A stretch of 64,000 nucleotides of DNA from Mobula hypostoma (lineage: Eukaryota): contig NC_086118.1 of the NCBI RefSeq assembly GCF_963921235.1, positions 2,046,001-2,110,000 on the forward strand, in the 5' to 3' direction. The translations under genes and the position numbers were made by a program. The notes beneath the pieces are model-generated. The model was not told where the DNA came from, searched no databases, and saw nothing but the letters and a program-made list of their open reading frames with translations. Positions 1 to 51,789 of the stretch are shown piece by piece. How positions within the stretch are numbered: the stretch's first letter is position 1; each line of letters starts with the position of its first letter.

Positions 1-1865
1 AATATGAGCTGTTGTTCCTCTTGGTGGCCTCCAACCTGAGGGGGCAGGACATATAATACTGAGATGAGAAGAAACCGTCACACAGAGGGTAATTAATCTA
101 CCAGGCAGCCTATTTCAATGTGCAGAAAGACCTGGATACTTTTCGAGCATGGGCTGATAAATGCCATTTCCGGGAAACATTCTACCCTTGACATTCAGAG
201 TCAGGTTTAATATCCCCAGCGTATGTCATGAAATTTGTTGTTATGCAGCAGCAATGCATTGCAATACAGAATGAAATCTGTGAATTACAGGAAGAAGCTG
301 TTTCTGAATTGTTGTGTGCGCACCTTCAGGCTCCTGTACCTCCTCCCTGATGGTAGCAATGAGAAGAGGACATGTCCTGGGTGATGGGGTCCTTAATGAA
401 GCATTGCTGCTTGAAGATGTTCTGGATGCTGGGGAGGCCAGTGCCCGTGATGGAGCTGATTGAGTTTACAACATTCTGCAGCTTATTTCAATCCTGTGCA
501 GTGCCCTCCTCCCTCCATATCAGACGGTGATACAGCTAGTTAGAATGCTCTCCCTGGTACACCTGTAGAAATTTGTGTGTCAATGGCCCAACCACCACCA
601 AGTCCCTCCATAAACATTCAGAATGGCCCCATTGACCAGAATCACAAGCTGACCAGTTGCAGAATACCACGGCCATAGGAGCAGGTACGAGGCGTGGTAA
701 CTCACCTCCTGACAACGCACGAGGCGTGGGATACTACGGTGACTCACCTCCTGACAACCCACGGTCTACAAGGAGAGCAATGGAATGCTCTCAACTTGCA
801 CGTATGAGTGCAGCTCCAATCTTTCACACGAACACCATAGTGTATGGTTAGTAGAACACTATTACGCCATTAGCACCGTGACCCGTGTTCAATTGCGCCA
901 CTCTGCAAGGAGTTTGTATGTTCTCCTCATGACCGCACGACCTCGTGTACTGTGGAGAGCGTTCTAGCTGGCTGCATCAGCGTCTGGCATGCACGGCACA
1001 GAATCAAAACCAGCTGCAGAGAGGTGTGCTGCTCTGACGGGAGTTTGCATGTTTTCTGGGTGCTCTGAGTTCCTCCCACATTCCAAGGACGTATGGGTCA
1101 GTAGGTCAGTGGGTGTTCTTGGGCAGCATGAGCTCGCTGGGCCTTAAGGGCCAGTTACCACGTTACATCTCGAAATGAAATCAGGTAAATAAGTGAACAA
1201 CGCCAGGCAGTGGCCACAACGCACGGTGCCCAGGCTATTCTGAGAGCACTTCCAAATCCCTGGATCTTTACCACCAAGAGCGGCAGGTGTATGGGAGCAG
1301 CACCATTTGCAGCCCCTCCTGGGTTGCACCCCATCCTAGTTTGGAAAAGTATTGCAAAAAAAGACTTTAATGTTGGAAAAACGCAGCCACCCAAGCAGCA
1401 TCTGTGGATAGAGAACCGCATCACTGTTTGAGATGAGATATCCTTCTTCAGAAACTAATTGAGTGGTTTTCCTGCTCACCCTTGCTGAGGTCTTCCAGTG
1501 TTTCTGTTTTCAATCCTTTCACTGAAGCATTGAGTGCTGCATGTCACTGCCAGCAGCCTTAGACATAGCTGCATTTTTAAAAATCAGCCATAAAAAGCGT
1601 CTGGCCCTGTCTCTCACAGATTGGTTGTCACACAACGGAGAAGCGGCTGGTTTTGCCAACAACACACAACCTCTACCGTACCTTCATAAATACTGCCTGA
1701 CTTGCTGAGTTCACCCAGCATCTTATGTGTATTGCTTGAGATTGCTAGCATTTCCGGAATCTCCTGTGAGGCAGGTTTGTCTTTCAGATTGGGCTATTTC
1801 CACAACTCTGCAATTTATTGTGGTCTTGAGCAGTGCAGTTGCCAAGCGTCAGGGTGTGCACTGAC

Positions 1866-4800
1866 ACATAGAAACATAGAAAACCTACAGCACAATACAG
1901 GCCCTTCGGCCCACAATGCTGTGCCAAACATCCTCACCTTAGAAATTACTAGGGTTACCCATAGTCCTCTATTTTTTGAGCTCCATGCACCTGTCCAGGA
2001 GTCTCTTAAAAGACCCTATTGTATCTGCCTCCACCACCATCGCCAGCAACCCATTCCACGCACTCACTGCTCTCTAAGTAAAAAACTTATCCTTGACATC
2101 TCCTCTGTACCTAATTCCAAGCACCTTAAAATTGTGCCCACTTGTGCTAGCCATTCCAGCCCTGGGAAAAAGCCTCTGACTAGCCACACGATCAACGCCT
2201 CTCATCATCTTATACACCTCTATCAGGTCACCTCTCATCCTCTGTCGCTCCAAGGAAAAAAGGCCGAGTTCACTCAACCTGTTCTCATAAGGCATGCTCC
2301 CCAATCCAGGCAGCATCCTTGTAAATCTCCTCTGCACCCTTTCTATGGTTTCTGACTAGGGTCCTATTTAGCTGCAACATTACCTCTCTGCTCCAAAACT
2401 CAATTCCACGAATGATGAAGGCCAATTCATCATATACTTTCTTAACCACAGAGTCAACCTATGGACTCAGACCCCAAGATCCCTCTGATCCTCCACATTG
2501 CCAAGAGTCTTACCATTAATACTATATTCTGCCATCATATTTGACCTGCCAAAATGAACCACCTCACACTTATCTGGGTTGAATTCCATCTGCCACTTAT
2601 TAGCCCAGTTTTGCATCCTATCAATGTCCCGCTGTAACCTCTGACAGCCCTCCACACTATCCACAACACCCCCAACCTTTGTGTCATCAGAAAACTTACT
2701 AACCCATCCCTCCACTTCCTCATCCAGGTCATTTATAAAAATCACAAAGAGTAGGGGTCCCAGAACAGATCCCTGAGGCACACCACTGGTGACCGACCTT
2801 CTTGCAGAATATGACCTGTCTACAACCTCTCTTTACCTTCTGTGGGCAAGCCAATTCTGCATCCACAAAGCAATGTCCCCTTGGATCCCATGCCTCCTTA
2901 CTTTCTCAATAAGCCTTGCATTGGGTACCTTATCAAATGCCTTGCTGAAATCCATATAGAGTACACTACATATACTGCTCTACCTTCATCAATGTGTTTA
3001 GTCACATCCTCATAAAATTCAATCAGGCTCGTAAGGCACGACCTGCCTTTGACAAAACCATGCTGGCTATTCCTAATCATAATATGCCTCTCCAAATTTT
3101 CATAAACCCTGCCTCTCAGGATCTTCTCCATCAACTTACCAACCACTGAAGTAATCACTGGTCTATCTCTATTTCCCTTCTTGAATAATAGAATAACATC
3201 CCAGCCCTCCAATCCTCCGGAATCTCTCCCGTCCCCATTGATGATGCAAAGATCATCGCCAGAGGCTCAGCAATCTCCTCCCTCGCCTTCCACAGTAGCC
3301 TGGGGTACATTTCGTCTGGTCCCGGTGACTTATCCAACTTGATGCTTTCCAAAAGTTCCAGCACATCCTCTTTCTTAATATCTACATGCTCAACCTTTTC
3401 AGTCTGCTGTAAGTTATCCCTACAATCACCAAGATCCTTTTCCATAGTGAATACTGAAGCAAAGTACTCAGTAAGTATGTCTGCTATCTCCTCCGGTTCC
3501 ATACACACTTTCCCACTGTCACACTTGATTGGTCCTATTCTCTCACGTCTTATCCTCTTGCTCTTCACATCCTTGTAGAATGCCTTGGAGTTTTCCTTAA
3601 TCCTGTCCGCCAAGGCCTTCTTATAGCCCCTTCTGGCTCTCCTAATTTCTTTCTTAAGCTCCTTCCTGCTATCCTTATAACTTCCTAGATCTCTATCACA
3701 AGCTAGTTTTTTGAACCTTTTGTAAGCTCTTCTTTTTAACTAGATTTACTGCAGCCTTTGTACACCACGGTTCCTCTACCCTACCATCCTTTCCCTGTCT
3801 CATTGGAATGTACCTATGCAGAACGCCATGCAAATATCCTCTGAACATTTTTTCTTCTGTACATTTCCCTGAGAACACCTGTTCCCAATTTATGCTTCCA
3901 GTTCCTGCCTGATAGCTTCATATTTCCCCTTACTCCAAGTAAACGCTTTCCTAACTTGTCTGTTCCTATCCCTCTCTAATGCTATGGTGAAGGAGATAGA
4001 GTTGTGATCACTATCTCCAAAATGTTCTCGCACTGAAAGATCTGACACCTGACCAAGTTCATTTCCCAATACCAGATCAAGTACAGCCTCTCCTCTTGTA
4101 GGCTTATCTACATATTGTGTCAAGAATCCTTCCTGAACACACCTAACAAACTCCTCCCCATCTAAACCCCTCGCTCTAGGGACATGCCAATCAATATTTG
4201 GGAAATTAAAATCTCCCACCACGACAACCCTGTTATTATTACACCTTTCCAGAATCTGTCTCCCTATCTGCTCCTCAATGTCCCTGTTACTATTGGGTGG
4301 TCTATAAAAAACACCCAGTAGAATTATTGATCCCTTCCTGTTCCTAACTTCCACCCACAGAGACTCTGTAGACAATCCCTCCATGTCTTCCTCCTTTTCT
4401 GCAGCCATGACACTATCTCTGATCAACAATGCCACACCCTCACCTCTTCTGCCTCCCTCCCTGTCCTTTCTGAAACATCTAAAGCCTGGCACTCAAAAGT
4501 AGCCATTCCTGCCCCTGAGCCATCCAAGTCTCTGTAATGGCCACAACATCATAGCTGCAAGTACTGATCCACACTCTAAGCTCATCCGCTTTGTTCATGA
4601 TACTCCTTGCATTAAAATAGACACATCTCAAACCGTTGGTCTGAGCCTGTCCTTTCTCTGTCACCTGCCTATCCTCCCTCTCGCACTGACTCCAAGTTTT
4701 CTCTATTTGTGAGCCAACCACCTCTTCCTCCGTCTCTTCAGTTTGGTTCCCACCCCCCAGCAATCCTAGTTTAAACTCCCACCAATAGCCTTAGCAAACC

Positions 4801-5230
4801 TCCCTGCCAGGATATTGGTCCCCCTGGGATTCAAGTGCAACCCATCTTTTTTGTACAGGTCACTCCTGCCCCAAAAGAGGTCCCAATGATTCAGAAATCT
4901 GAATCCCTGCCCCCTGCTCCAATCCCTCAGCCACACACTTATCCTCCATCTCACTCTATTCCTATACTCACTGTCACGTAGCACAGACAGTAATCCCGAG
5001 ATGACTACCTTTGTGGTCCTGCTTCTCAACTTCCTTCCTAACTCCCTGTAGTCTGTTTTCAGGACCTCCTCCCTTTTCCTGCCTATGTTATTGGTACCAA
5101 TATGTGCCACGACCTCTGGCTGTTCTCCTTCCCACTTCAGGATATCGTGGACGTGATCAGAAACATCCCGGACCCTGGCACTTGGGAGGCAAACTATCAT
5201 CCGTGCTTCTTTCTTGCGTCCACAGAATCG
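1866..5230 (-). mobile_element. CR1-clade LINE, decayed, with ORF1 esterase fragment plus APE endonuclease and RT fragments; internal deletions
   Basis: Minus ORFs: 4766-5200 (HIGTNN...DGLHLN, SGNH esterase), 4479-4763 and 3890-4492 (VAITETW, GDFNFP, SDH; APE), 3155-3613, 2898-3212, 2467-2781 ([12 protein letters not shown]; RT), 2074-2337. The 3' tail reads catagaaacataga on + at ~1866. Confidence 0.92.
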
Positions 5231-5379
5231 TGCGGACTCCCATGCAGAGACAGAAGCAAGAGTTTATTCATAGGAATTCTGACTGAACGTTGGAGGCTTG
5301 GCCGAGCAACACAGCGTGATGAATCATTCTCGAAACAAGGACCCAGCAATTAGTTCTAATTGTGAGTCCTCTTTCAATA

Positions 5380-6390
5380 ATCACAGTATGCAGAAAACCT
5401 GATACTCTACTGTGCATCCATAGGAATTTGAGAAAGTTTTAGATGACATGCGCAAACTTCTAAGACAGTAGAGGTGCTGCCACGGTTTCTTTGTAATGGT
5501 ATTTATGTACTGGACTCAGGACAGGTCCTCTGAATGATAATGCCACAGGATTTAAAATTACCCACCCTCTCCACCTCCGATCCCCTGAAGAGGACTGGCT
5601 CATGGAGCTCCAATTTCCTCCTCCTGTAATCAATAATCAGCTCTCTGGTTTTGCAGACATCGAGTGAAAGGTTGTTTTGTGGTACCATTCAAGCAGATTC
5701 TCAATCTCCCTCCATTATGTTGATTCATCGCCACCTTTTACAAATATCCCACCTCTCCCAGAAGTTCCGGGAGTCTCCTGCATATTAATAGTGGCTCCCT
5801 GACGCCTGAAAATTATATACAATGTCCCGGAAATTGATTTTTTTGAGAGAAAGCGTGAGAGAGAGAGCAAGCTAGCGCGAGTGACAGAGACCACGAGCGA
5901 GAGAGTTCCAAAAAATGTCAGAGTGGCAAAATGTTCCAAAAAAAATAAAACGTACGTCACCCCAGACTACACTAAAGTGTGCCCCTGGCTAATAGGGGTC
6001 AAAGTAATGACAGTGTTGCTCGCTGCACTGTTTGCAACAGTGACTTTTCTATTGCCCATAGTGGGTTAAGACTGTAAAAGACGTGTTGAGGTGAGTTTAA
6101 CAGGTGTCATTCGTTTATTAGCATAGCTAACGTTATTTAAACTAGCTGGCCAGCTGCTAAGGAGCTGCTCTATTGCAGACATCCCGCCTCTCCCGGGAGT
6201 CTCCCGCAAATTGATGGTGCTACCTCCCTGAAATGAGTTTTTGCAGGGTGGGATGTCTGCTTTTATTCGGCCAACAACAGCGGTGTCCTCAGTAAACCTG
6301 AATATGGTATTGGAGCTGAATTAAGCCGGAAAGCATGAGTATCAACCGTGTATCACCCAGTCTTGTGGTACATCTGTTCTGATGGTCTAC
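5380..6390 (-). mobile_element. Degenerate non-LTR retrotransposon RT fragment (Rex1/L2-like), interrupted by a MITE
   Basis: ORF 5503-5688 reads NNLSLDVCKTRELIIDYRR...VERVGNFK, a typical RT C-terminal motif. Host sequence continues across the 5741-6259 insertion. Confidence 0.65.
5741..6259. mobile_element. Non-autonomous DNA transposon (MITE) with 13-bp TIRs and 6-bp TSD
   Basis: Left end CAAATATCCCACC; right end GGTGGGATGTCTG (revcomp CAGACATCCCACC). CTTTTA is duplicated at 5735-5740 and 6260-6265. Confidence 0.75.
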
Positions 6391-6499
6391 ACTCTGAACA
6401 TCGCTGACCATCAACGACTTTCAGCTCAAACATTAACCAATACCAATGATAGGTAACTTTACAGGTTTCTGTCTTTTTATTCCCGAACTACCTATGGTC

Positions 6500-6900
6500 A
6501 TTCCTGTTACTCCAGATTGTCAGCACTCCGCTCCCCAGTCCCGCCTGCCTGCTGATCCAGTCCGGGTTTGTGGTGTGGCTGGACTGGCGCGGCCGCCATG
6601 AGGCCGTTCTCCAGGCGCTCGGCGAAGCCGCTGCTGTTCGGGGCGGTGGGTGCGGTGCTGGCGGCCGGCTTCCTCTACAGGTGAGGCGGCACCGCGTGTT
6701 CCCGGTGGGTGCCGTGTGGCCCTGAGAGACAGCAGGACAGGCTGAGGGGCTGTTCAACCACTCTGGCCTACCCAGTCCCCGATGGCGCCGCTCCCTCCCT
6801 CCCTCGGCAGGGCAGACATTCCGTCCGCTTGCCTCCGTGATCTTTCCTCCTCACCTCCCTCTGCCGCTATGACCTTTTCACTCCCGTGACCTCCATGACC
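6500..6900 (+). promoter_or_regulatory. CpG-island promoter and first exon of the microprotein gene
   Basis: Strong local GC/CpG enrichment, GC box CCCCGCC at ~6539-6545, Kozak GCCGCCATG at 6592-6600. Confidence 0.75.
6598..6680 (+). CDS. Exon 1 CDS of an unnamed 71-aa single-pass membrane microprotein (MRPFSRRSAKPLLFGAVGAVLAAGFLY-R)
   Basis: GCCGCCATG start inside a CpG island; 83 nt; ends at consensus donor CAG|GTGAGG (phase 2). Confidence 0.8.
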
Positions 6901-8539
6901 TTTCCCCTCTCTGACCCGGTGACCTTTCCCTTCTCCCCTGAGCCTGGATCCCTCGTGTCCGGGGAAACCCGGCCCGATGAGCCCGACAAGATGCGAGGTC
7001 CCTTTTGTGGCGAGAAGACCAAAATTATGCAACCATATAACAATTACAGCATGGAAACAGGCCATCTCGGCCCTTCTAGTCCGTGCCGAACTCTTACTCT
7101 CACCTGGTCCCACCAACCTGCACTCAGCCCATAACCCTCCATTCCTTTCCTGTCCATATATCTATCCAATTTAACTTTAAACGACAACATCGAACCTGCA
7201 AAAATTGTTTTAGGTATTCTCCCGTCGAGTCCTTGTTAAACCAACTCTTGTACTCAACCCTCTCGCAATAAAGATCAACTCTTAACTTGCTTTCAGTAAA
7301 TCGTGTACAATGACATCCAGGTCATTTTAAATGCCAATGCTTCCTAATCCATCACGTAAACAATACTCAGCATTTCTGTTTTCATTGGACAATTTCGCAT
7401 TTTTCAATGTTGTCCTGTGCTGTCATGTCGTTGCCTATTCACTGTTCGTATGTAGCCCAGAAGACTCCCTGACACTTGGAAGGACTCTTTCAAAGTCCTC
7501 AGTATCTGTGAGAGACAGGGGCACGTGGACAACAAAAAGCAGCAACACACAGCAGTCAACTCTTCCGTGGATATAACAATGTCACAGTTTTCAGCTTGTC
7601 AGAAAAACCTCAGCTTAAATTGCAAACCTACCTGGTCTCTGAACTTTTTTTCCCAACCCCAGTCCCTGCAGGCTGCACGCTGACTCACCTTCCTGATCAC
7701 AACCAGCCTGCTGCCTGTCTTTCTGAACCTTATCTTGATTCTGGCCACAAACTATCTATCTATTGGTATTTTCACCAAATGACAGCACATTGAATGCAGT
7801 CTGCCATCTCATAGCAGATAGGATTCACTAACCTCACAGGAGAGGGCTCTGGAGGAACTTGCTGTAGTTAGTCGTGCTCCCAATAGTGCACACCTACATG
7901 GATCAACAAATATTAAATCAGCGGATCTCGGGGATTTAGTGTGTAACGTTTAGGTAAATCAATATAGAATGTGATTAGTTGGGGGTCTAAAGACTGATCA
8001 TGTGGTATCCCATTAGACACAGCCTGCTGTCCTGAGGACATTTTTATTCCTATTTTTTTTCTATTTGTTAACCAGTTCTCAGCCCCCTCATCCTATGTGC
8101 TCTAACTGTGTCAGCAATCTTCCATGTAAGGCTTTATAAAAGCTTTCTGAAAATTGAAATACTTCACCTCTACCCAATTATCTACTGTATTACATATATT
8201 CCCAAATAAATCTATTAGATTAGTCGAATATTATTTCCCTTTCAAAATCCAAATTGACTGCTCCATCACGTTAATTTCTAGGTGTCTTGATATCATATCT
8301 CTATCAGCATTTTACCCACTACTGATATTGTTAACTGGTCAGGAGTACCCTGCTCTCTCTCTTCCTCCTTCCTTAGAGGGGGCAGGCACACCTCATCCTC
8401 CAGTCAGCAGGAACAATTCCAGGACCTATAGAATTTTGGTCTATGATGCTCTCTTCTTCCAAAAAGTTTGGGAATACCAATTTTTAGGCTCATTAAACTT
8501 TCTGGTGTTATTTCTTTACTAATACTAATTCGTTTTACC

Positions 8540-9890
8540 CGGCTCATCAGTATTTTTGATGAGGTTTCAAGGTACTTGGAGACTAATGATAAAATAAGTC
8601 AACATCAGCATGGTTTCTGTAAAGGGAAATCCTGCCTAACCAATCTGTTAGAGTTCTTTGAGGAAGTAACAAACAGGTTGGACAAAGAAGAGGCAGTGGA
8701 TGTCATTTACTTGGATTTTCAGAAGGCGTTTGATAAGGTGCCACTCGAGGCTGCTTATCAAGATAAAATCCTATGGAGTTACGGGAGAAATACTGGCATG
8801 GATTGAGAAATGGCTGACAGGCAGGAGGGGGCAGTGAGTGGGAATAAAAGGGGCCTTTTCTGGTTGGCTGCTGGTGACTAGTGGTGTTCCTCAGGGATCA
8901 GTATTGGGACCGCTACTTTTCAGATTGTTTGTCAGTGATTTGGATAATGGAATTGATGGCTGTGTGGCAAAGTTTGTTGATGATATGTGGAGGGGTAGGT
9001 AGTGCTGAGGAAGGAATGTGATTGCAGCAGGACTTAGACAAATTGGAAGAATGGGCAAAAAGGTGACAGATGGAATACAATGTGGGGAAATGTATGATAA
9101 TGCATTTTACCAAACATCAAAATAGTGCCGACTATTTTCTAAATGAGGAGAAGGTTCAAACATCAGAGATGCAGAGGGACTTAGGAGTCCTCATGCAAGA
9201 CTCCCAGAAGGTTTTTTTTAGCCAGAAGGTGGTGAATCTATTGAATTTGTTGCCACGGGCGGCAGTGGAGGCCAAGTCATTGGGTGTATTTAAGGCAGAG
9301 ATTGATAGGTAGCTGAGTAGCCAGGGCATCAAAGATTATGGTGAGAAGGCGGGGCAGTGGGACTAAATGGGAGAATGGATCAGCTCATGATAAAATGGCG
9401 GAGCAGACTCGATGGGCCAAATGGCCAGCTTCAGCTCCTTTGTCTTATGGTCTTATGGTCTTAAGGTTAATTTATAGATTGAGTCTGTGGTAAAGAAGGC
9501 AAATGCAGTGTTGGCATTTATTTCAAGGGGAATAGAATATAAAAGCAAGGAGATAATGCTGAGCCTTTATAAGACACTAGTCAGGCCGCACTTGGGAGTG
9601 TTGGCAACAGTTTTGGGCCTCATCTGAGAAAGGATGTATTGTCATTGGAGAGAGTTCAGAGGAGGTTCACAAGGATAATTCCAGGAATGAAGGGGTTAAC
9701 ATATGAGGAGCGTTTGGCAGCTTTGGGCCTGTACTCACTGGAATTTAGAAGAATGTGGGGCAATCTCATTGAGATCTACCAATTGTTGAAAGGACTAGAT
9801 AGGGTGGATGTGGAGAGGGTGTTTCCTATGATGGGGTATCCAGAACTAGAGGGCATAGTCTCAAAATTGAAGGGTGACCCTTTAGAACAG
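8540..9890 (+). mobile_element. CR1 LINE RT/3' fragment with a second CR1 3' end nested at ~9208-9462
   Basis: QHGFCKGKSCLTNLLEFFE...YLDFQKAFDKVP and [10 protein letters not shown] motifs. The nested copy ends in (cttatggt)n and is flanked by aaggtt. Confidence 0.85.
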
Positions 9891-9899
9891 AGCACCTTT

Positions 9900-10465
9900 G
9901 TTCTGTCTGCAACAGGCAGGATTTCTTTGTGGCCAACTATTTTAATTCTACCTCCCATTCTGACTCTGACATGTCAGTCCATGACTCTACAGTCACGGTG
10001 AGGTCACTCTCAGGTTGGAGGAGCAACGCCTTATTTTCTGTCTGGGTAGCCTCCAACATGAAGCCACAAATGTTTATTTCTCTGTCTACCAGTAATTTCT
10101 CATATTAGCCCCTCTCTCATTTTCCATTCCCCATTCTGTCTTCCCTCTTGCCCTTCTCGACTCCTGCCCATTCCCTTTCTCTCATGGTCAGCTCTCCTTT
10201 CCAGATTCCTCCTTATTCAGCCCTATACTTCTTCCACCTATCACCTCCAAGTTCTCACTCATCCACTCCTTTCCCCACCCACCTACCAGATTTCACCTAT
10301 CACCTGCCAGTTTATACTTCTTCCCTTCCCCCATCTTCTTATTCTGGCTTTCTTCCCCTTCCTTTTCAGTCCCGGGGAAATGTCTCGGCCTAAAACGTTG
10401 ACAGTTTATTCCCCTCCATAGATGCTGCCTGGCCTACTGAGTTCCTCCAGCATTTTGTGTGTTGC
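9900..10465 (+). mobile_element. Penelope-like element 3' fragment (end of GIY-YIG endonuclease plus pyrimidine-rich pseudo-LTR with decayed hammerhead)
   Basis: Decayed coding sequence for ...SDMSVH...LRLEEQRLIF.LGSLQ..., followed by the same terminal repeat (gatgctgcctggcc...ccagca) seen in the other PLE copies. Confidence 0.7.
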
Positions 10466-10489
10466 ACATGTTCTGCTTTCTTTCCAATA

Positions 10490-10935
10490 TTTTTATTTAT
10501 TTATATATATATAAGAATACAGAGTACAGGAAAACAATATACATGTCAATACAGTAAACTGAATGGCATATAAAGACTCCTTATCCTATATTTGTACAAG
10601 TCAATTAGTTCATAACATTTCAAAAACAATGATTTTATTATATAAAAAAACAAACCCACTACCAAGACCAAAGCTGATTAGTAGAAAAAAAAAGATTGTT
10701 AGTCATCATCTGTGCTTTAACAGCAAATCAAAGGTTTTGAAAATAATTCAGAAAAGGTCCCCACAATGTTTGAAAGTCTTGATTGGATTCAAAGATTGAA
10801 CATCGAATCTTCTCGAAATTTAAACATGACATCACATCACGTAACCATTGGGCATGAATAGGAGGGGCCGCATCTTTCCATTTAAGCAAAAGCGTCCTTC
10901 TGGCCATAAGAGAGATAAAAGCCAAAATGTGCAAT
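10490..10935 (-). mobile_element. L1 3' fragment
   Basis: ORF 10728-10934 reads LAFISLMARRTLLLKWK...WGPFL (L1 ORF2 C-terminus). An A-rich tail with AATAAA lies at ~10490 on the minus strand. Confidence 0.8.
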
Positions 10936-11829
10936 TCTGCTTTCTTTCTTTATCACTTTCTTGGCATCCTTTACTGAATTATAAAAATATTTTCAGTCCT
11001 CAGGCTTACTCTTACTTCTGTCAATTTATAACCACCGGTCTTAATGCTGTTTAGTATCCCCTGTAGTCCAAGGTTGCATCACCTTTCTCATTGTGTCTTT
11101 TACTCTGAAGCAATGAATATCTGCTGCAAATCATGATTTTTTTTTTGCATTAGGTTCTAGCCTGTACCCCTCAGTGTAGTATCCATTCTACCATAGCAAT
11201 TCTGCCCCTCTTACCCGTGGAGATTGAGAACTCTGTTACCTGGCTTTCTAATCTGAAAACCTTCATTCTATTATAGTCATTCTTTCTAGAGGCCTCTTTA
11301 TGATTTTATAATCCTATCACATTGTACTGTACCTGCTGTTTCCTTATTGAGAAATCTATCCTATATAGATTCCATTAATTTATCCTCTACATTACTAGTA
11401 ACAATTTGATTTGTTGATTAAAGTCCTCCCTGATTACTGCATTACTCTTTTCATGCACCTCTGATATCCTTATTTATACCGTCATTGATTACATCTGCAA
11501 TTTGGAGGCCAATAGATAACTCTCAGCAATGTTCTCTGCCCCAGATTCTTCAATGCACCATCCAAACCATTCCTAATTCTCTACCAGAACCTGCCAACCC
11601 AAGGTCGTGCTGAACTTCGGTATTGATCTCATCTCCTATTATCTGTGCTACCTCACTTCTTCAGGCTATTTTGCCAGCCTTTCCTAAGTACCCTGGTGAG
11701 TAGGAATCAATGCATTGACAGCTGGAAACATAGCTTGAAGATGCTTGAGAGTGGAGCCTGGGGTCAGGGTGCCCACCAGCCCGGGGCAATCATTGGCCCA
11801 GGCTCAGCAGGGTTTTCTGTCTTCAACAG

Positions 11830-11962
11830 GCGCAGCTTCTTCCCCGACATTGAAGAGATCCGAGCTCGAGAGCAGCAGAAATACAGTGAGAAGCTGCAGC
11901 TGGTTCTCGAACGAAGGGAGAGGCAGCTACTGGAAATAGAGCAGAAGAAATCAGCCCGGTGA
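11830..11962 (+). CDS. Exon 2 (terminal) CDS of the 71-aa microprotein (R-RSFFPDIEEIRAREQQKYSEKLQLVLERRERQLLEIEQKKSAR*)
   Basis: Acceptor ttttctgtcttcaacag|G is phase-compatible with exon 1 (83+133=216 nt = 71 codons + TGA). The sequence is coding-like, a charged helix. Confidence 0.8.
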
Positions 11963-12159
11963 GCTTGGGAAAGAGCTGAACAATGTCACTACGTAATGGC
12001 TGCTTATCCTGCTCTAGGAGACTGCCAACAGGCACCTGAATCCGACCATTAAGACTAAAAGGAAAACGAGTACTGAATCAAAATACTTTTAGTGAAATTT
12101 GCCTTAAAGAATCACACCAAGTAATCTGATATGTTTCTACATTGTACACCGTATGCTGT

Positions 12160-12165
12160 AATAAA
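12160..12165 (+). terminator. Poly(A) signal of the microprotein gene
   Basis: AATAAA about 200 nt after the stop, followed by T-rich sequence. Confidence 0.6.
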
Positions 12166-15100
12166 TCATTTCTAATATCATTTTAACATAGGAGTTTTGA
12201 TTGTCACATTTAACACAAAAGAACTTCTCTACTTATTCTACACTATAGAGAGAATCCAGCATCACGCAGTGGTAAAAGCACAATGAATTGTACTAAGATA
12301 TTTAAACCAGGAGATTACAGGTCTAATCCCTTATTCTTAAACATAGGAAAGAGAAAATAATGGATCCAAATTCAGCAATATATCACGGAACTCATCAATG
12401 CAATGATAACCATGATTTGATATAATTAACCTTTGTTACTTCCTATGTCATTCTGGCGGAAGATGGTTGAAAATTCTTCAGCTTGTCTTTGCCATTTGTA
12501 CTGGGTGATCCATTGATGAGGGTAGTGAAAATGATTCCTTCTCCCATTAATTAGTTAATTTCCTGTCACTGGATGTAGAAGTTCTGATCTGACCGTTCTA
12601 CCAACAGCGTTAGGGATGCATGCCTGCCCTGCTGACCAATGCCTTTCACAGCTAAATCAGTTTGGTGATGCCAGTCTTTGTGATGGACACTGAATTTCCC
12701 AACCAGTGTGTTGTGCACCCCCCCCCCCAAGGTTCTTCCAAGTCATGGTCAATGTGGACGTGCACGGATTCATCACCTGAGGCAATCCTCGGGTTTCCTT
12801 TTGTCTAAGCTGCTGTAATGAGGCTCAAATGTCCAGACCCAATGTCAGAGATACTTCCTGACTGAAAATGATTGTGCCACCATCTCTGGTGGGCTCGTTT
12901 TAGTGTAACGAGACTTACTTCTCTATCATATCCATCTTGTGGGTGGCTGAAAGATGTGATCCAGTTTGTCACTTGACTTTCTAGTTGTATAGTACCCAAT
13001 TTTGACACCAGTTCCCAGATTTGAGTTAGTTATTAAAAGGAATTTTGCAAATGAAGGCACAACCATTGGAGAAGGAATTATAACCAGGGACAATTAAGAA
13101 GTGTAGAGGAGCAGATATCTCAGATACATAATCTGGAAGGAGTCAGGTCATGAGAAGATATAAAAATGTTGAAAGAATCTTTTAATGTAGCTATGGTTTA
13201 ATTGGTAAATCAGTGGGATCATATTATCTTGATATAAGTGGAGGCATTTCACCTATGCTGGCTCTTAGGGCAATCTCATCAATCACATTGCTTCATTTAT
13301 TTCTTTGTAATTTATTCTTTCTCGTGTTTGCCACTGTTTTCCTTACCAGCCACTTACATAAGGGCTAATTAACAGTCGCATGTGTTTTGGACACAAGAGG
13401 GCTGAAGGAAACCCACATGGCGACAGGGAGAAAGTGCAGACTCCACACCAAGTACTGTAGGCTAGGATTGAATTCAGGCCTCCTCTGAGTTGTGAAGCAC
13501 AGCTCTACAGATCCATTGTGTTTCCCAAGGTGATGGATGGAGCAACAGATATTTGGATGTGAAGCTTAAGAATAGAAGAATAAGAAAGTTGTTTTTGTTT
13601 AGTAGTTATGAAGTCTGGAGGTAATCTAGCTTTGGATGATTTCAGTGACAATTGTGTTGAGGCAGGACTGAATTAAAAAGTAATCTGTCTTGCTGATGGC
13701 CCAAATTTGTGGTTATGTGCTTTGATATTATGCGACGATTGTGAACAGATGGCAGAGTTTGAGATGTCACCGAGAAAAATGGGAGCGTATTGTTGGTGCC
13801 AAGGAAATGAAGTCCGTTTCAGCAACAAAACACAACCTTAATCTGCCCAACATTTACTGGGAGAAAGTTTGGTAAGAAAGAATTGCTTGGTGTTTGAGTG
13901 AGGTCTGTGTATGTCTCCCATGTACAATATCCCTGTGTTCTAGTGATAGATGTTTACATTCCTCAGGGCTGTGCATACACTGTGATTAATACGTAGTTAG
14001 CCATTGAGTTACCTTGTGTTAAAATCAGATTACAGCAACAATTGTTACTGTACCACTAGATCCTCAGCAGTTGAATATATTCAAGGCAGATGGTATCCAA
14101 AAGACGGGGCAGGAAAGTGGATGAAGAACCGAACTGACCAAGTAGTTAGTCCTGAAGAAGTCCTCCATTCATATCTCTTACGTACTTACTGGCACTCAGG
14201 GCAGCAATGAAGGTCCTCCATCTCTGTCTGTATGGAAGGATTCTTCATTGCTGTCTCCATAACAATTGTTTTTTGACAGTCAGGATTGTTAGCCCTGAGC
14301 TGAACCCCCAAACCTGGAGGACTGGTTGGCCACTGTTAGTCTGTCTTCTACCCTTTGACCTGTTTCGCATGGGTAATCCTACCAACAGCCAAAGCATAAA
14401 GCCCTGACCCAGCCAGCATAGCTCTCCAGGTCACTGAGGCACCAAACCCTATGATGAGGTTGTGGTCCTCTTGGAGGTTATTATTCTCCAAACTTACTGT
14501 TAAAGATGGTCTTGTCTCTAGCAAACTCAGATTTGGAACAACACCACTAATATGTTGGCACCTTGCAGTTTGAAATGAATAGAAACAGAACAGCATCACA
14601 CTCCAGTGAATGCCTAATGACAATACTGAGTGGTTTAATTATCACATTTTCAGAAAAGTAGTCATCCAATGCAGGAGGAAAAATATGACCTTAACATGAA
14701 TTACTGAATCACTTCATTCAGTGCTTATGCAATAATTACAATACTGTATCCCAGCCCTCCCAAGAAACCAGCCCTATATTCATTGAGTGGAATCCATGCA
14801 CACAATGCTCCACAGGAAGAACACAAAAGAACTTTCACTGAGCATACACACTGAAATTAATGGGGCTCTGCTTCCTAGTCATCAAGGAACAAGCAATATC
14901 ACAGGTCTGTTAAAGGCAATTAAATGCATTGGCTGAATATATACATATTACACAACAAACAATACCACAGGGAGATTTGGCAGCCTTAACAATTAATTTT
15001 TGAGACAAGTGCTGTGGGCCTCTCATAGGCTTCAGGTGAAAGGCAGAGAGGTTGATTTCTCAGTAAAACGAGCCCTCAAACCTTGGGAGGCCCATGTGAG

Positions 15101-15207
15101 CTGAAAGTGTCGAGGCCAGTGTCAAAGGATGGCAAAGGGTTGGTGCCCTCAACAGACGGAGGATTCCTCTTCACAAGGAATGTAAACAGCAATTCTGATC
15201 AACAGCG

Positions 15208-15237
15208 TCACATCCTCGAGCCTCGCTCTTGCAGAAT
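15208..15237 (-). CDS. KCTD2: KCTD2 exon 6 (ILQERGSRM*)
   Basis: Acceptor ...aaacag|ATT; C-terminus matches the KCTD2/5 family ending ILQERGSRM. Confidence 0.93.
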   Translation of the reverse strand: MLQERGSRM

Positions 15238-15435
15238 CTGTTTCCAATAAGAAGACAATTATTAAGAAATTGAGTAGGAAGATGAAATCTGGTGAAACCG
15301 GTTGGACTATAAAACTGGTTCTAACTACCCCTGTCAAAATATCCCTCATCTCAGAGTGCATCTGACTTCACATCTTTGCCCCCAACAATGCAAAGAATAT
15401 CTCGAACCACCCCAATCTGACGACTGTAAGTTAGC

Positions 15436-16058
15436 AACACAAATAAAAATTGCTGGTGAACGCAGCAGGTCAGGCAGCATCTCTAGGAAGAGGAACAGTT
15501 GACATTTTGGGCAGAGACCCTTCATCAGGACTAACTGAAAGAAAAGATAGTAAGAGATTTGAAGGTGGGAGGGGGAGAATTTAAATGATGGGAGAAGACA
15601 GGAGGGGGAGGATGCAGCTAAGAGCTGGAAAGTCCAGGAACAAGCAATATCACAGGTCTGTTAAAGGCAATTAAATGCATTGGCTGAATATATACATATT
15701 ACACAACAAACAACATCACAGGGAGATTTGGCAGCCTTAACAATTAATTTTTGAGACAAGTGCTGTGGGCCTCTCATGGGCTTCAGGTGAAAGGCAAAGA
15801 GGTTGATTTCTCAGTAAAAGAAAGTCCAGCTCTTAGCTCCATCCCTCCCCCTCCTGTCTTCTCCCATCATTTCGGATCTCCCCCCCCACTCTCAAATCTC
15901 TTACTATCTCTTCTTTCAGTTAGTCCTGATGAAGGGTCTCAGCCCGAAACGTCGACTGTACCTCTTCCTATAGATGCTGCCTGGCCTGCTGCGTTCACCG
16001 GCAATTTTTATGTGTGTTGCTTGAAATTCCAGCATCTGCAGATTTCCTCGTGTTTGCG
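15436..16058. mobile_element. Penelope-derived fold-back (inverted pseudo-LTR) insertion in KCTD2 intron 5, carrying a captured 184-bp host segment
   Basis: Arms ~15436-15630 and ~15825-16018 are reverse complements, followed by a ~40-nt unpaired tail. Imperfect TSD: CGACTGTAAGTTAGC (15421-15435) and CGACTAGAAGTTAGC (16057-16071). Confidence 0.85.
15922..15957 (+). ncRNA. Minimal type I hammerhead ribozyme motif (PLE-associated)
   Basis: AGTC-CTGATGA-A-GGG(tctcag)CCC-GAAA-C-GTC^GACT: intact core, stem I AGTC/GACT, stem II GGG/CCC, palindromic ACGT stem III, GUC cleavage triplet. Confidence 0.8.
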
Positions 16059-16139
16059 ACTAGAAGTTAGCCTGTTTTGTGACAAATACAGCAAGCAGGT
16101 GAGAAAGAACAAGCGGGAAAGCTATGGACAATGTAGTAC

Positions 16140-16265
16140 CTTGGCTTTTTCACTAGGTTCGATGACAATTCCATTAGTTGAGTTATTCAGTTCCCTGGAG
16201 ACAACGCAGAGAAATTCAGCCTGATCTTCACTGCCATAGTTGTAGGAGGATCCAATACTAATGAG
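16140..16265 (-). CDS. KCTD2: KCTD2 exon 5 ([42 protein letters not shown])
   Basis: 126 nt, cag/gt boundaries; KCTD2/5/17 C-terminal domain with the KCTD2-type [16 protein letters not shown]. Confidence 0.96.
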
Positions 16266-16991
16266 CTGAGACAGGACCAGAATTTAATTAGTAGCAGCAT
16301 ATACAAAGAGGCACCAGATAAATCACACAAACCTTTCATATCGCCTTCCAGAATTTGATCAAATACAACCGGTTACAATGGTAGAGATCACCATACACAT
16401 TGGCTGGAACATCTAGTTGATCTCTCGAAGTTCAGAGATCTGAACACAAAAAGGCAGCTAACTCCATAATTCTTTTTGCAGGGAATACTGCAGTACCAAA
16501 CGTGCTGTTTTTCAAAAGAGATATTAAGAAACACTTATAATAAAGACCAACGTCTGCCACAAAGATCTAAGTGTTTGAAACCATCTTGTTGAGGTTCCAA
16601 AGCCCCAAACTAGACAGCAAATCATATTGGGGAACTATGACAGTTTGCTACAGAATTGCTAGAAAGACCCAAAAAGTTTAAGATAATAAGTGCTTACTAA
16701 ACTTCAAAAGTGGCTATGTTGCAGATTAGAGAAGAATTTTATGGTCTACCTCGGAAATAAGAATTTGTTTCTTTCAGAATACATCTCGTCACTGTGTTCC
16801 CGTTCACATTGACGACTAGGACTCCTCCTACAAAGGGCTCAGATCATAAACAGTATTTCTAAAGGAGGAAATGTTGTGGTGCTCCTGATGGATGGATGGA
16901 TGGGCTGTATATTCTGTTGGCTCTTGCCAATATGATATTATCCACACATTCTACAATATGTTTCAATGGATGCAGTCTGAATGAATCTTAT

Positions 16992-17275: not shown

Positions 17276-18330
17276 TGCAACCCTGTTGACCCTGTCAAAC
17301 TGTTACCTTTTCAATGTGAAATCTGTAAGCACACTATAGGTTAGCAATGATACTAATTGATCAGAAAAGCTATTATCAAGTATAACTCAATGGTTACATG
17401 TGTAGATCTGCATGTGCAATCAAATTAGCTACTCTAAGGCAATTGCTCAGAAAGCAATCGTAACTTGAGCGGATTCTAGGAGGAGTTTTTCATAAGCAAT
17501 CCCTATATGTTAATAACACATTGGACAAGTGTCCCTCAGTGAAAGCACATTGAGCACAGTAATGACCATTCAGACCATGCTGATGATAATGCTCTGCTCC
17601 AGCCCTTTGCTATTTTTCTTATCTGAATATTTATCACACATACATGCATACATCCAGCTTCTTAAAGTCATCTGTACTATTACCTTAACCAGCAAGAAAC
17701 AAATTCTCATTACTCTCTGTTGAGTTTTTTTGGGTTTCCTGTTTGGCTTCTTACTAACTAGTAGATACTGGTGAGAGTTTTTATACAGCACTATCAACAC
17801 CTTTTCTACGTGTCATTAAAGTAATCGAGACTGCTGGTTATAGGGGCTGATGGATTGACACACAGCAATGCTGAGCACCAGCAGTCCATTCCCACCTTAC
17901 AAAACACACAGATCAAGTCTCATTCTACAAAAGGCAGCAGGTCACATCTTCCTTTCACAGTTCAAACCAAGACAACATATTGGCTCTCATAACCTTCAGC
18001 TGCCTCCGACACCAAAAGGAAACTTCATTTTCTCTTAACCTCTTTGAAAAGCCCACTGTCCAATATCTTGCTGGCAATCAAATGTATATATTAAAGACCC
18101 CTCTGTCATAGAGGTCATTCTAACTGTATGTTGATTTTCCCTCTTCTTAAGTTATTGTCTTTTTGTCAATGTTTTTGTTTATCTGTTTATTAACTGCTTA
18201 AGAATAATTATTTATGATCCTTAGAATTCAATAACTTTAAATTATGACAGTATTAATGTTTACCATTACCATGCTCTCTTAACTCCTAATTTGCAAAACA
18301 GATTGTTTTGATTGAAAATTGAAGTGCTAC

Positions 18331-18426
18331 CTGCTCAAATTTCCATCCGTCCGACATCGTAGAAACCATCTGTGTGAGTTCCTCCTCCTGACACTGTAGG
18401 ACGCGGTAAACATGTTTCACTGGACC
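18331..18426 (-). CDS. KCTD2: KCTD2 exon 4 ([32 protein letters not shown])
   Basis: 96 nt, cag|GGT...CAG|gtag; conserved family motif. Confidence 0.96.
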
Positions 18427-18454
18427 CTGTAGAGTAGACAGTAATACCATGAAC

Positions 18455-19070
18455 ACGCTACATCAATGGTGTTGAGGTTGAAGAGTTGAAGGCTTCAATT
18501 TTCCTAGGAGTGAACATCACCAACGCCCTGGTCCAACCAGGTGGACACCACAGCTAAGCAAGCTCACCAATGCCTCTATTTCTTCAGTAGATTAAGGAAC
18601 TTTGGCATCAACCCTTACAGATTTTTATCAACGCACCACAGAAAGTATCGTATCTGGATGCATAATCCCTCAGTATGGCAACTGCTCTGCCTGTGACCGC
18701 GAGAAACTGCCGAAAGTAGTGGGCACAGCTCATCACATCACGAAAACCAGCCTCAGCTCTATCTATCTTTCTCACTGCCTCAGTAAAACAGCCAGCCCAT
18801 CCACCCCATACACTCTCTCTTCTCCCCTCTTCCACTGGGCAGAAGGTACAAAAGCCTGAAAACACGTACCACCAGGTTCAAGGACGTCTGTGACTACTAA
18901 ATGGCTCCCAGTAGGATGAGGTGGGCATTCGACCTCACGATCTACCCTGGTATGCTCTTGTACTTTGCTTATCTGTACTGCAGCAGTTACACTTTATTCT
19001 GTACTCTGCTATTGTTTCATCATGGTTTATCTCAATGGGACACCATGCAAGACAAACTTTTTGCTCTATC
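18455..19070 (+). mobile_element. Decayed LINE RT 3' fragment (Rex1/L2-like)
   Basis: Decayed ...KQAHQCLYFFSRLRNFG...FYQRTTESIVSGCI..YGNC... motif. Confidence 0.65.
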
Positions 19071-20977
19071 TTGGTATCATAGTAATTCCTATTCAGATAT
19101 ATGTAAAAGTCAGTTACAAATACTGAGGCTAATTTTCAGAAGTCGAGCACATAAAAGTCCTTGCAATAAACAGGATGTGACCAATTGCTAGTGCACAAAC
19201 AGACATAATCGCGTCTGGACTGCCAGCCAATTTCAAGATGAGTTCTTACAAAAAGATAATTATTGGATTCTCACAAAGGATCTGAAACCTGAGACATTGA
19301 CTCTTGTTGTAGATTCCTACTTTCTCTCCAGAAGTAGTTTGGAGTCTCCTTGAACTACTGGAGCCCACATGGCCACAGTGTTTCCACAATGCTGTTAGTT
19401 ATGGAGCTCCAACTACTGTGAAGGAAAAGTGGTGTACATGCAACTCAGAAGGTGAGTGCTTTGGAGAGGAATTTGAAATTGGTATTCTCATTCGTCTGCT
19501 ACCAATGTGTTTCCCAAATGATAGACGTCAGAGAATTTGGTAGTGATACCAAATGCGCTGCCAAGTGTCCAATTTGCTTTGTTCTAAATAGTGTTTAGTT
19601 TGAGAATTGTTAAAGGTACAGGCAACTTTCACTACACTCTTACTGTGCCTTGCAGGTGGTGGAAAGGCTTTGGGAGTCCAGAAGTACATCGCCTGTTGTG
19701 GATTATCCAACTTTTCACCTGCTCCAGCAGTCAGTGTGTTGACATTACCAGAAAATATTTAACCAGGTGGCTAAACTTCCTAATTTATACAAATGATCAC
19801 TGGCTGTTGTGTGTATGAAATCAATCCTAACTGTCTCATCGGCCTTAGCCTGAATGTTCCTGAGGTCTCGTTCATGTGGAATTTGAACTACTTCATTATC
19901 TGAGGGATTGCAAACGGAACAGACTCGTCCACCTCTGATCGTATGATAAAGGAAAATTCATTGAAAAAAAAAAGTCACTTATTTAGAAATTCCTGCAGGA
20001 ATATCCTAGGGCAGGGACAAATCACAGTCTCTCCTTTCTGGTTCTTATGGCTACAGCCACTGATCATTTTTCATCCTGGTCCTATTCAGAAATAGTACTC
20101 TGCTGTCACCTTTGCAAAAAATAAGCTCACGTCTATGTCTGGATCAAGACAACGGCGAGATCTGGAGTCTAAAAGTCAAGTGAGCATTAGTGGCGATGTT
20201 ATGGGTGCACAAGTGCTGCTGATAGTGCAGTCACCTTGCATGGGTTTTCACACAGCAAAACTTCCCAGCAGGGGTTAACAGTGTTTCCACTGTTGATCAG
20301 CCAGTGACTCGGCCACAACAATGCACATGTGGGAAAGTGGGCAAGGAAACAACTGGAGACAACTGTCAGCTGAAGTGTTTCAAACACGGGGCAAGGAATC
20401 AGATGTGAGTGAGATAACACAAGGCAACTCCTGCCTATGGAACAATCTAGGAGAGGTTCTGGGTAGCCTCATGTGAGCTATATGCAGCTGATCATTACCC
20501 AAATCTCAATTTCTCATCTACGCCAATCAACAGGATGGTGGGATTGGGGTAGGAGCTGCTGATCTGCCTGTCATATGGTCATTAGATTGCTTTATAGTTA
20601 GAGTTGGTACCTTTTAATTGGGCAGAGTGGAAGCAGACTTTTGAACAGCATATCCCAAACTGAAACTCACTCCCTTGAATATCTGTACTTACTTTACTGA
20701 ATTCACAAGGATATGAACAATTACAAAAAGATCAATTATTTTTGGGATTTCTATCCCCAAACTTACCCTAATACCATTGTCTTTGCAAGGCACACCATCT
20801 ACTCAAGCAATTCCAATCTGAATTTTGCTTGAATTGTTGTAAACATAGACTATTTCTCAGAGAGTTGACAGAAACTATTCTGTGACAGAAACAAATCCAT
20901 TCCTTTCACCAAGCACAAACTGTTATTAGGTAGTTTCCAAATGTTAAAAAAGGATCAAACAGTCAAGGTCAGCTCAC

Positions 20978-21069
20978 CTGTGAGGTCCTATTCTCCAAAT
21001 CCCGAATACGTTCTTTGACCAATCGGACAAGTAAGGCAATGTTATAGAACTCTGCCTCCTCCAGCACCC
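20978..21069 (-). CDS. KCTD2: KCTD2 exon 3 ([31 protein letters not shown])
   Basis: 92 nt, tttttacag|GG ... CAG|gtgag; end of the BTB domain (EEAEFYNI). Confidence 0.96.
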
Positions 21070-22799
21070 CTGTAAAAACAAAGACTGGTTAGGAAGCAGT
21101 TGGCCAGAGCTCAAGTCAGGCCACTCTGTATCACATCAAAGAAGGATCCTGACTATTGTACAATCCTTCAGAAACATTCTGACATTTCCACAACTAAACA
21201 GCCATCTGAAATACAGCACTGGAATTTCTCAAGACGTCATAACCCTGGAAATCTATCTCTTGAACCAAGCAGGTCAGTTCTACAGGAACTTGTGTTTTGC
21301 CTTAACTAGCTTGTCTTGTTAGAAATTGTGGCTTAACCGGCTGTTTCCAATGCCACAAACTAATTGATGGGGAAACCCTAAATTGAGTCTGGCAGCTTTA
21401 CAAATCTGTGATGAAGATACAGTCAAACTAAAGTTGAGATGAACTTTAGAGCACATTTTTCCCACTATATGAAATTTCCATAACGTAACCGATTACGGCG
21501 GCAACATGAAAAACAGCCACTCTTAGCCCCCGGAATTCGATGTCTGCATCCATCCACCAAGAATACAAAAGAGGAGATTGGAGATTTGAATGCCTGGCAT
21601 TTGCCTCATAGTTACACTGCTCACTCTGACTGGGTGTCTACACCATGGCAACTGTCTCCTCAGCTAGCCTGTACAATGATATTATAGTAAAGTGGCATTA
21701 AAAATAGGAAAGATCTCAATCTTTATAACTTCACAAATCTTAACTTAAAGATCTTTAATTTAGGTTACATTACATGTTTTGACAATAGACTTCTTAATTC
21801 TTGGTCTTTAAAGATAAATTTATGAATCACACAAGTTCTGAAGTAGTAAATACTTCCTCAGCTTTTTATATTTTCAGTATCCAATCTCACCTAGTGCCAA
21901 GTATCCGATATACAAGCTCACCATATATTGTGTAATATTCATACAGATTTTTCCATCACTGATTCAATCACTTTTCTCTGCCTGCCTTACTAAACTCTAA
22001 TTCCAAGGCTGCCATACACTATCTGGTACTCAAGCTAATTAGCATCAGACAGTGTATAACTACCGTGAATATCGGAACTTACCCAGCTAGGTCACATAAA
22101 ATTAAACATAACTTATCAACAGCTCATTGTGCTAATTCAGTACAATATAGAAATTAAACCTAAAAGCTAACTGCCTATATAGCTCGGCCCATCCCAAGTC
22201 TGTACTTAACACAAGACTATGGAGTCATCTGCAGACTTGAGCCTGTAACAAACAGAAAAACCAGAAGCAGTAGGAGGCCAGTCAGCCCCTCTCACCTGGA
22301 CCGCAATTCAGTAAGATCATGCTGATTTCTTATAGCAGCATTACAATCCCACACAAACACCATACCCCTTGATTCCTCATTACAGAAAAGTCCATCATTC
22401 TCAGTCTTGAATATACAGCAGCTGAGCCTCCACGACCGTCCTGGGTGGAGAATTCCAAAGATTCACTAATCTCTGGCTCAAGCTATAACTTCCCAAAGAT
22501 TCAATTTTATTTCTCACTTGTATCACTTGTACATACAGTGAAATGTGTCATTTGTGTTAATAACTGAGTGTGTGCTGGGGGCAGCCCACAAGTGTCACCA
22601 CACATTCCAGTGCCAACACAGCCTGTCTGCAATGGCATTATAACACAGAACACAACAAGCAACAAAACAACTTGTCCCAGTACTGAATAACAGCCCCTTA
22701 TTTTGAGACTGTGACTCCTAGTTCTAGGCACATAAGCAGTGGAAACATCTGTTCTGAATATACCTTGCCAGTCCCTTCAAAGTTCATACATTTCAATGA

Positions 22800-31263: not shown

Positions 31264-31583
31264 ATCGTAAAGTAATCTTACAAAGTTTATAAATAGTTTT
31301 CAGAAAATATTTACTAACTTTGTTCTGTTTAAACGGTACTTTACTGACTTGTTGCGGGAGGGCTGGATTTACACGTCTCAATCCCACGTCATCACGTGAC
31401 GCCCCCCACTTGTTTTTAAAAACAATTCAGTCTCTGTCACCTTGAATATCTGGCCCATGCAGAGCTAACAATCTGTGTCCGGGTCAATCTAGGAGCCTAG
31501 TGTATCTGAGTGTTTGAGTTACTCTCTGGTCAACCCTCCCTGTCAACATTTGGATTCTATTTCAGCAGATATTCATCTCTCAC

Positions 31584-51681: not shown

Positions 51682-51789
51682 TTGGGAAGCTCCTGGGGTT
51701 CCTCCCACTCTCCTCCTGCAACTTCAAATGTACTTTCAATCTTTGAAGATTTTATTTCTTGCAAATTAGAAAATGGCTAAAGCTGAAAA

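Follow-up and report, generated by a model that had tools for sequence, protein, structure and literature searches.

The question raised by the stretch of the Mobula hypostoma genome analysed here (64,000 nucleotides (nt) of contig NC_086118.1, positions 2,046,001 to 2,110,000 of assembly GCF_963921235.1; the whole stretch is called the window, and positions are counted from its first letter) is whether a gene lies hidden at 6598-11962, and what kind of protein it would make. An earlier note, made from the letters alone, had proposed for this interval a two-exon gene encoding a membrane microprotein of 71 amino acids (aa). The microprotein gene is real, expressed, spliced and protein-coding. 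Taken as a whole, the evidence is best explained by a conserved microprotein anchored in a mitochondrial membrane, whose charged helix binds a partner, and we hold this explanation to be probable, although by no means certain.

Each of the signals to which the proposal had pointed, namely a CpG island, a Kozak start, donor and acceptor sites, an in-frame join, an AATAAA and a 71-aa product, was found in the window sequence. The ATG at position 6598 of the plus strand, in the context GCCGCC-ATG, opens the coding part of exon 1 (6598-6680, plus strand, 83 nt), which encodes the basic N-terminus MRPFSRRSAK followed by the membrane helix PLLFGAVGAVLAAGFLY, and which ends with the first two bases of a split arginine codon at the donor CAG/GTGAGG (6680/6681). 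The phase-2 intron (6681-11829, plus strand, 5149 nt, GTGAGG...caacAG) leads to a pyrimidine-rich acceptor, ttttctgtcttcaacag/G, at 11829/11830, and the coding part of exon 2 (11830-11962, plus strand) supplies the last base of the arginine codon, the juxtamembrane motif RSFFPDIEEIRARE and a charged helix, up to the TGA at 11960-62. The spliced coding sequence (CDS) is 216 nt long and in frame, and its 71-aa product is identical to the one first predicted. It had also been claimed that the CDS is split, and this held true: it occupies two exons joined by a contig in RNA run X1, and the unspliced frame from ATG 6598 meets a stop after 28 codons. Exon 1 is surrounded by a CpG island and promoter region (6250-7000) with a GC content of 0.54-0.66 and a CpG observed/expected ratio of 0.69-0.77, as opposed to about 0.1-0.3 across most of the intron. 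The 3' untranslated region (UTR) extends over 11963-12186 on the plus strand and contains the sole plus-strand AATAAA nearby (12160-12165), and transcript contigs stop at 12180-12186.

Transcription and splicing were observed directly. In run X1, whose contigs were placed on 6400-12300, one contig with a word depth of 882 skips 5149 nt with GT..AG ends. Its joint, ambiguous by four letters, was placed at 6676>11826, which is equivalent to 6680^11830, the very junction over which the earlier note had called for spliced reads. In the same run, exon depth was 359-926, compared with about 14 over the 3' end of the intron, and RNA depth rises at 6400-6793, around exon 1. Words of exon 1 were present in RNA runs from several organisms, exon 2 and the 3' UTR were matched by runs from at least eight organisms, and the exon-2 contigs of the remaining runs start at 11826-11828. 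Runs of four further organisms were placed on the window at a likeness of at least 80%. In runs X9, X11 and X12, from three of these organisms, contigs over exon 2 depart from the genome at 11826, and upstream of this point they share the same 30 letters, which read in frame as VATVLAVGFIY-R. The counterpart in the window is VGAVLAAGFLY-R, differing by four conservative replacements in the helix. Since these transcripts carry an orthologous exon-1 end at 11826, junction and frame are common to those organisms.

Other RNA signals at the locus have a different character. Run X2 had zero depth over exon 1 and gave one 1523-nt contig of uniform depth (61.7) over 10884-12300, unspliced through the intron end and exon 2 and continuing beyond the poly(A) site, and the exon-2 contigs of runs X5 and X19 likewise extend beyond that site. 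These contigs may represent read-through, or else the KCTD2-type gene of the opposite strand may have a long 3' UTR that lies antisense over exon 2; minus-strand AATAAA signals are found at 13296 and 13311. Much of the intron between 7.0 and 10.9 kb matches high-copy repeats, with an apparent RNA word depth of up to about 180,000 at 10340-10536, and the many chimeric joints and loose ends at 7000-10900 are what an interspersed repeat family that is transcribed typically gives.

If the gene is real, does its product have relatives? A word-indexed protein search with the full 71 aa gave no match, which means that this collection lacks the ray protein, and an Atlas search with exon 2 alone gave no informative result. 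Exhaustive phmmer of exon 2 (43 aa) against 1.84 billion representative proteins retrieved only two matches with E <1e-3, both of them genuine relatives: P0001 is an open reading frame (ORF) of a sturgeon transcript holding the whole protein, and P0002 comes from the genomic contig L003, which is unspliced, with exon 2 behind a ...ccccag/A acceptor. The latter contig is closest to the lizard locus described below, flanking non-coding sequence included, and it is probably from a squamate. Cluster look-up identified the sturgeon relatives as Huso huso KAK6478412.1 and Acipenser oxyrinchus KAK1163899.1, of 76 aa each and labelled "hypothetical protein". Profile searches, with E-values for relatives of 1e-17 to 1e-39, added Podarcis lilfordi CAI5766001.1 (73 aa, "Hypothetical predicted protein"), Caretta caretta CAM2101920.1 (74 aa, "unnamed protein product") and a 75-aa transcriptome protein; further members, in the same cluster, come from the turtles Natator and Mauremys. 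The relatives are 48-57% identical to the ray protein. Judged by their sequences, these proteins of ray, sturgeon, turtle and lizard form one unnamed jawed-vertebrate microprotein family of 71-76 aa. The presence of the family from ray to reptiles implies an origin that predates the divergence of cartilaginous from bony vertebrates.

No source gave a name for the family, and no RefSeq (XP_) entry was found among its listed accessions. A Pfam scan of the ray, sturgeon, lizard and turtle members and of member P0008 (hmmscan, E up to 10, a range within which the HMMER speed filters discard most matches above E ~0.1) returned nothing beyond noise. A profile search of the PDB gave chance matches only (E >1, for instance FFPDVE in ESS2) and no relative, and in the full-text literature no paper was found by the family motifs or by pairings of the neighbour genes. 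A new family had been among the alternatives considered from the sequence, and with neither a Pfam match nor a name in any source it is this alternative that stands.

The members share a detailed anatomy. Two family alignments contain 13-15 invariant columns; in ray numbering, F31, F32, P33, E36, E37, R39, A40, E42, K49, V53, R56, R57 and Q60 are invariant. The core of this pattern is the invariant motif FFP-x-x-EE-x-RA-x-E, in its fuller form R-[RH]-x-FFP-[DE]-[VI]-[ED]-E-x-RA-x-E, and the helix start KP-x-LFG is kept in every full-length member. All genomic members compared (ray, Huso, three turtle assemblies, Podarcis and L003) have a phase-2 intron inside an arginine codon just after the helix, with boundaries of the form CAG/GT...AG/[AG] and intron lengths of 510-6872 nt. 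Nei-Gojobori dN/dS was 0.12-0.22 for all pairs, synonymous sites being saturated in the deep comparisons (0.12 between the two sturgeons, 0.13 between turtle and lizard). At short range, the 133-nt exon-2 CDS of four other organisms differs from the window at two positions only, both synonymous (11867 C>A, CGA>AGA, Arg to Arg; 11911 A>G, GAA>GAG, Glu to Glu), whereas the 224-nt 3' UTR of four organisms has about 11-13 substitutions plus indels, that is, a divergence of about 5% compared with 1.5% in the CDS. These figures indicate that the family evolves under purifying selection. The search for relatives and the dN/dS analysis proposed in the earlier note gave sturgeon, turtle and lizard proteins under constraint.

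It is against this conservation that the reading of the locus as a non-coding or spurious transcript, with an ORF produced by the chance of splicing, has to be set. Such a reading could draw on the fact that translation is argued from conservation, and on the missing XP_ accessions, as the reference annotation pipelines apparently do not call the gene. A chance ORF is hard to reconcile with the preservation, between ray and reptiles, of the frame, the length, the intron phase and 13 invariant residues, with the dN/dS range given above, or with exon-2 CDS changes among ray species that are all synonymous. By the conservation data it is effectively refuted already, and its probability is negligible.

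The closest resemblance noticed by eye had been to PIGBOS1, of which the gene was suggested to be a paralogue. A query with human PIGBOS1, in a sequence that agrees with the peptide fragments printed in PMC6814811, retrieved 14 proteins, all 14 with PF23670, and the 10 that were named at source were all mammalian PIGBOS1. The Pfam scan detected no PF23670 match (E up to 10) in the ray, sturgeon, lizard, turtle and P0008 members. The genes are also organised differently: human PIGBOS1 has an intronless CDS head-to-head with PIGB (PMC6814811), and hamster PIGBOS1 is a contiguous 165-nt CDS adjoining a Glyco_transf_22 (PIGB) gene, whereas the microprotein family has its conserved phase-2 intron and other neighbours (ARMC7-like, SLC16A5-like and KCTD2).

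Nevertheless, profile comparison returned a signal. With hhalign, the family aligned to mammalian PIGBOS1 with a score of 26.4 (P 6e-5, probability 65%), collinear over 44 columns of a 54-aa protein. Among column shuffles that keep the N-terminus, helix and tail segments, only 2 of 750 reached this score, and without the ray sequence the score remained at 20.4 (probability 18%; reached by 6 of 400 shuffles). As a control, the same family profile was aligned to single sequences, giving 19.7 for PIGBOS1, 21.9 for SMIM20 and 10.3 for PET117. Since SMIM20 scores as well, the signal from PIGBOS1 does not exceed what a different single-pass family rich in Gly/Ala gives. The by-eye matches EKLQLVLE and EQKKS proved mostly ray-specific, pairwise z-scores being 3.5-4.7 for the ray but 1-4 for other members. 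Of the language-model neighbours of PIGBOS1, 13 were PF23670 clusters, including one in which Ascomycota is the commonest phylum, and the listed neighbour sets of the turtle member included no PF23670 cluster, which marks PIGBOS1 as an old, separate family. That PIGBOS1 arose as a retrocopy of the microprotein gene in mammals was also considered, but this was set aside as unsupported on account of the PF23670 clusters outside chordates.

Both proteins have an N-terminal Gly/Ala-rich helix starting with LLF, a proline kink after it and a short helical tail that is charged and includes a stretch resembling EK-x-Q-L-V-x-E. PIGBOS1 differs in its length (54 aa with a tail of about 29 aa, compared with 71-76 aa and 44-47 aa), in lacking the basic residues that the microprotein family has after the helix, where the charge is -1 in PIGBOS1 and +2 in the family, and in its PIGB neighbour. 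The suggestion of a PIGBOS1 paralogue is thus not borne out, given the absence of PF23670, the different intron and neighbours and the equal score of SMIM20, and by these sequence comparisons the family appears to fall outside PIGBOS1. A weaker form of the idea would make the microprotein a diverged homologue, either an ancient paralogue or the non-mammalian counterpart, working, like PIGBOS, through a signal anchor in the mitochondrial outer membrane and a cytosolic tail that at contact sites binds a partner in the endoplasmic reticulum (ER) such as CLCC1. It would account for the shuffle results, for the common pattern of P-x-LLF-[GA], G/A-rich helix, Y..F-x-P and EK-x-Q-x-V-x-E, and for the fact that the named PIGBOS1 matches are all mammalian and the microprotein family members all non-mammalian. 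Set against the control score, the z-scores outside the ray, the gene organisation, the opposite charge after the helix and the absence of PF23670 both from the members and from the listed neighbours of the turtle protein, this distant kinship is a tentative and rather unlikely proposition.

What, then, does the architecture of the protein say? A single N-terminal helix and a charged C-terminal region were evident from hydrophobicity, from charge and from an AlphaFold2 model of the turtle member built with the family alignment (mean predicted local distance difference test (pLDDT) score 80.6), in which a helix at 7-29 is followed by a break at 30-35 (YRHRFFP) and a second helix at 36-72 with pLDDT ~90. 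The first helix is moderately hydrophobic (Kyte-Doolittle 1.5-1.9) and Gly/Ala-rich; the flank before it is acid-free with a net charge of +4 to +5, and two basic residues (R-[RH]-x) stand right after it. The tail contains 11-13 basic and 8-10 acidic residues with weak heptad character. From the layout first described, the basic acid-free N-terminus, the one Gly/Ala-rich helix and the charged helical tail were confirmed. A coiled coil was unconvincing, with only about 5 of 11 heptad a/d positions hydrophobic, and this part of the description was dropped.

The layout had been called typical of mitochondrial microproteins, and the language-model comparison agrees. Among the 100 nearest clusters of the turtle member, every family-named set was a small single-pass mitochondrial inner-membrane family: PET117 (23 of the 100), COX6C, SMIM20, CBP4, ATP synthase e, UQCC3, DUF4748 and UPF0640. 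PET117 (PF15786), SMIM20/MITRAC7 (PF15061), UQCC3, CBP4, BRAWNIN/DUF4748 and SMIM4/UPF0640 resemble the microprotein family in size class and in placing a single helix between a short, basic N-terminus and a helical tail that is charged, but none of their Pfam models matches any member of it at E up to 10. For SMIM20, hhalign gave 21.9 (P 8.7e-4) over 27 helix columns only, with LIFGG...AAFY..FRP aligned to LLFGA...AGFLY..FFP of the family, and no PF15061 match was found. Kinship with PET117 was rejected, as the sole link was a language-model score of 0.89, with no PF15786 match and an hhalign score of 10.3 (P 0.28, human sequence). A likeness of another sort is with TOM20-type signal-anchored outer-membrane proteins, whose targeting uses a moderately hydrophobic helix that is preceded by a short N-terminus and followed, within a few positions, by basic residues. 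The microprotein family shows a similar pattern, with R-[RH]-x after the helix; it has no sequence relationship to them and no receptor domain, and its N-terminus is more strongly basic.

On these grounds the destination of the microprotein is probably mitochondrial, and the inner membrane is somewhat more likely than the outer. The N-terminal helix would anchor the protein, with the basic N-terminus, the helix and the two following basic residues together serving as the targeting and anchor signal. Beyond the invariant FFP, where the chain kinks, about 37 residues are predicted to form a charged helix that projects from the membrane, and its invariant EE-x-RA-x-E, together with RR-x-x-Q, would form the working surface. 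This helix would most likely bind a partner protein or complex, as small oxidative phosphorylation (OXPHOS) assembly factors and PIGBOS do.

Several observations weigh against this account. In the organism of the window, the junction is documented by one contig of one run (X1), the shorter side of which is 30 letters, and the translation of the gene we infer from conservation only. The language-model scores do not exceed 0.90, the families retrieved are inconsistent and the tool itself warns that the top family is probably wrong. The neighbours therefore support the layout and not kinship; no member matches the Pfam models of the named neighbour families (hmmscan, E up to 10). Basic residues flank the helix on both sides, which makes the topology ambiguous. 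There is, moreover, the alternative of an ER or secretory-pathway microprotein with a signal anchor, inserted co-translationally, with its charged tail acting in the cytosol or lumen. ER microproteins, too, commonly combine a single N-terminal helix with a charged tail, and language-model scores are leads only. The helix of the family has the moderate hydrophobicity and Gly/Ala richness described above and follows an acid-free, strongly basic N-terminus, a combination that favours mitochondrial targeting over targeting dependent on the signal recognition particle, and no ER family was found among the named language-model neighbours. The ER alternative is considered improbable.

The chromosomal setting adds to the picture of a conserved microprotein gene. 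In turtle and lizard, the order is NT5C (plus), ARMC7-like (minus), microprotein (plus) and an MFS_1 transporter of about 490 aa (minus, SLC16A5-like), and in Huso it is ARMC7-like (minus), microprotein (plus) and an MFS_1 protein of 518 aa (minus). The human order, which we take to be ATP5PD-KCTD2-SLC16A5-ARMC7-NT5C, matches these neighbours, so the turtle, lizard and Huso genes belong to the same block. That block position was seen in turtle, lizard and Huso; in the ray the microprotein gene adjoins KCTD2, with the ARMC7 side outside the view. In the turtles and the lizard, the microprotein gene begins 1.3-2.1 kb from the opposite-strand ARMC7-like gene (at about 8700-10001 of these loci), a proximity that suggests a shared bidirectional promoter.

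In the window, the plus-strand microprotein gene lies tail to tail with a KCTD2-type gene on the minus strand (15208-37400), and the convergent arrangement first described is thereby confirmed. Six-frame motif scans placed the exons of this gene at about 37000-37400, 31576-31722, 20972-21088, 18289-18462 and 16125-16283, with the last coding exon ending in ...ILQERGSRM and a stop near 15208. The description of the gene as standing beside ATP5PD was loose: the last coding exon of ATP5PD (55361-55549, plus strand) lies beyond KCTD2, and the conserved neighbours are the ARMC7-like and SLC16A5-like genes. When all ORFs at the loci of turtle, lizard and sturgeon were compared with the 64-kb window by tblastn, transposon matches and exon 2 were the only hits. 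Neither ARMC7 nor SLC16A5 is thus detectable in the window, and SLC16A5 is missing from its position next to the microprotein gene in the ray. ARMC7, if still adjacent, would lie beyond the start of the window. The SLC16A5-like MFS transporter stands directly downstream in sturgeon, turtle and lizard, and 12200-16100 of the ray window has only the 3' end of KCTD2.

The remainder of the window is rich in repeats. A G/A-rich minisatellite of 2.4 kb (45116-47516), with 52- and 67-nt units and higher-order periods of 134-202 nt, leaves every one of the three frames of the minus strand open, and the resulting mechanical ORFs measure 929, 777 and 723 aa. It stands upstream of the last ATP5PD coding exon, which suggests an intron of that gene as its location. 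A tandem array at 50040-51682, with 42 copies of a 39-nt unit at 98% matches, accounts for ORFs of about 580-590 aa on both strands. ORFs and fragments of LINE-type endonuclease/reverse transcriptase occupy 1700-5300, 27920-31263 and 38824-42266 (for example 3893-4492 and 27923-29677 on the minus strand, and 38824-41037 on the plus strand), and those of the window resemble, at the protein level, repeats of the sturgeon locus L002.

As to what the locus means, the family is new and unnamed, while the kind of protein, a single-pass mitochondrial-type microprotein, is a known one. Conserved microproteins still escape annotation, and for the present family a few submitter-annotated genomes offer no more than the labels "hypothetical" or "unnamed", even though the evidence for it is unusually clean, with a transcript seen to be spliced, an unvarying intron phase, synteny that is conserved and, between ray and reptiles, a dN/dS of about 0.15. 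Time and again, small single-pass mitochondrial proteins with such a layout have proved to be assembly factors, or to regulate respiratory complexes and organelle contacts, which makes a new conserved member a concrete and testable candidate. It is conceivable, although we would not expect it, that this is a hitherto unrecognised mitochondrial microprotein family about 450 million years old, perhaps a new factor of the OXPHOS-assembly type or an ancient sister of PIGBOS1, which might even persist unannotated between SLC16A5 and ARMC7 in mammals, humans included. If mammals retain the gene, it would add one more to the human mitochondrial parts list, and if they have lost it, the difference between lineages would be worth explaining.

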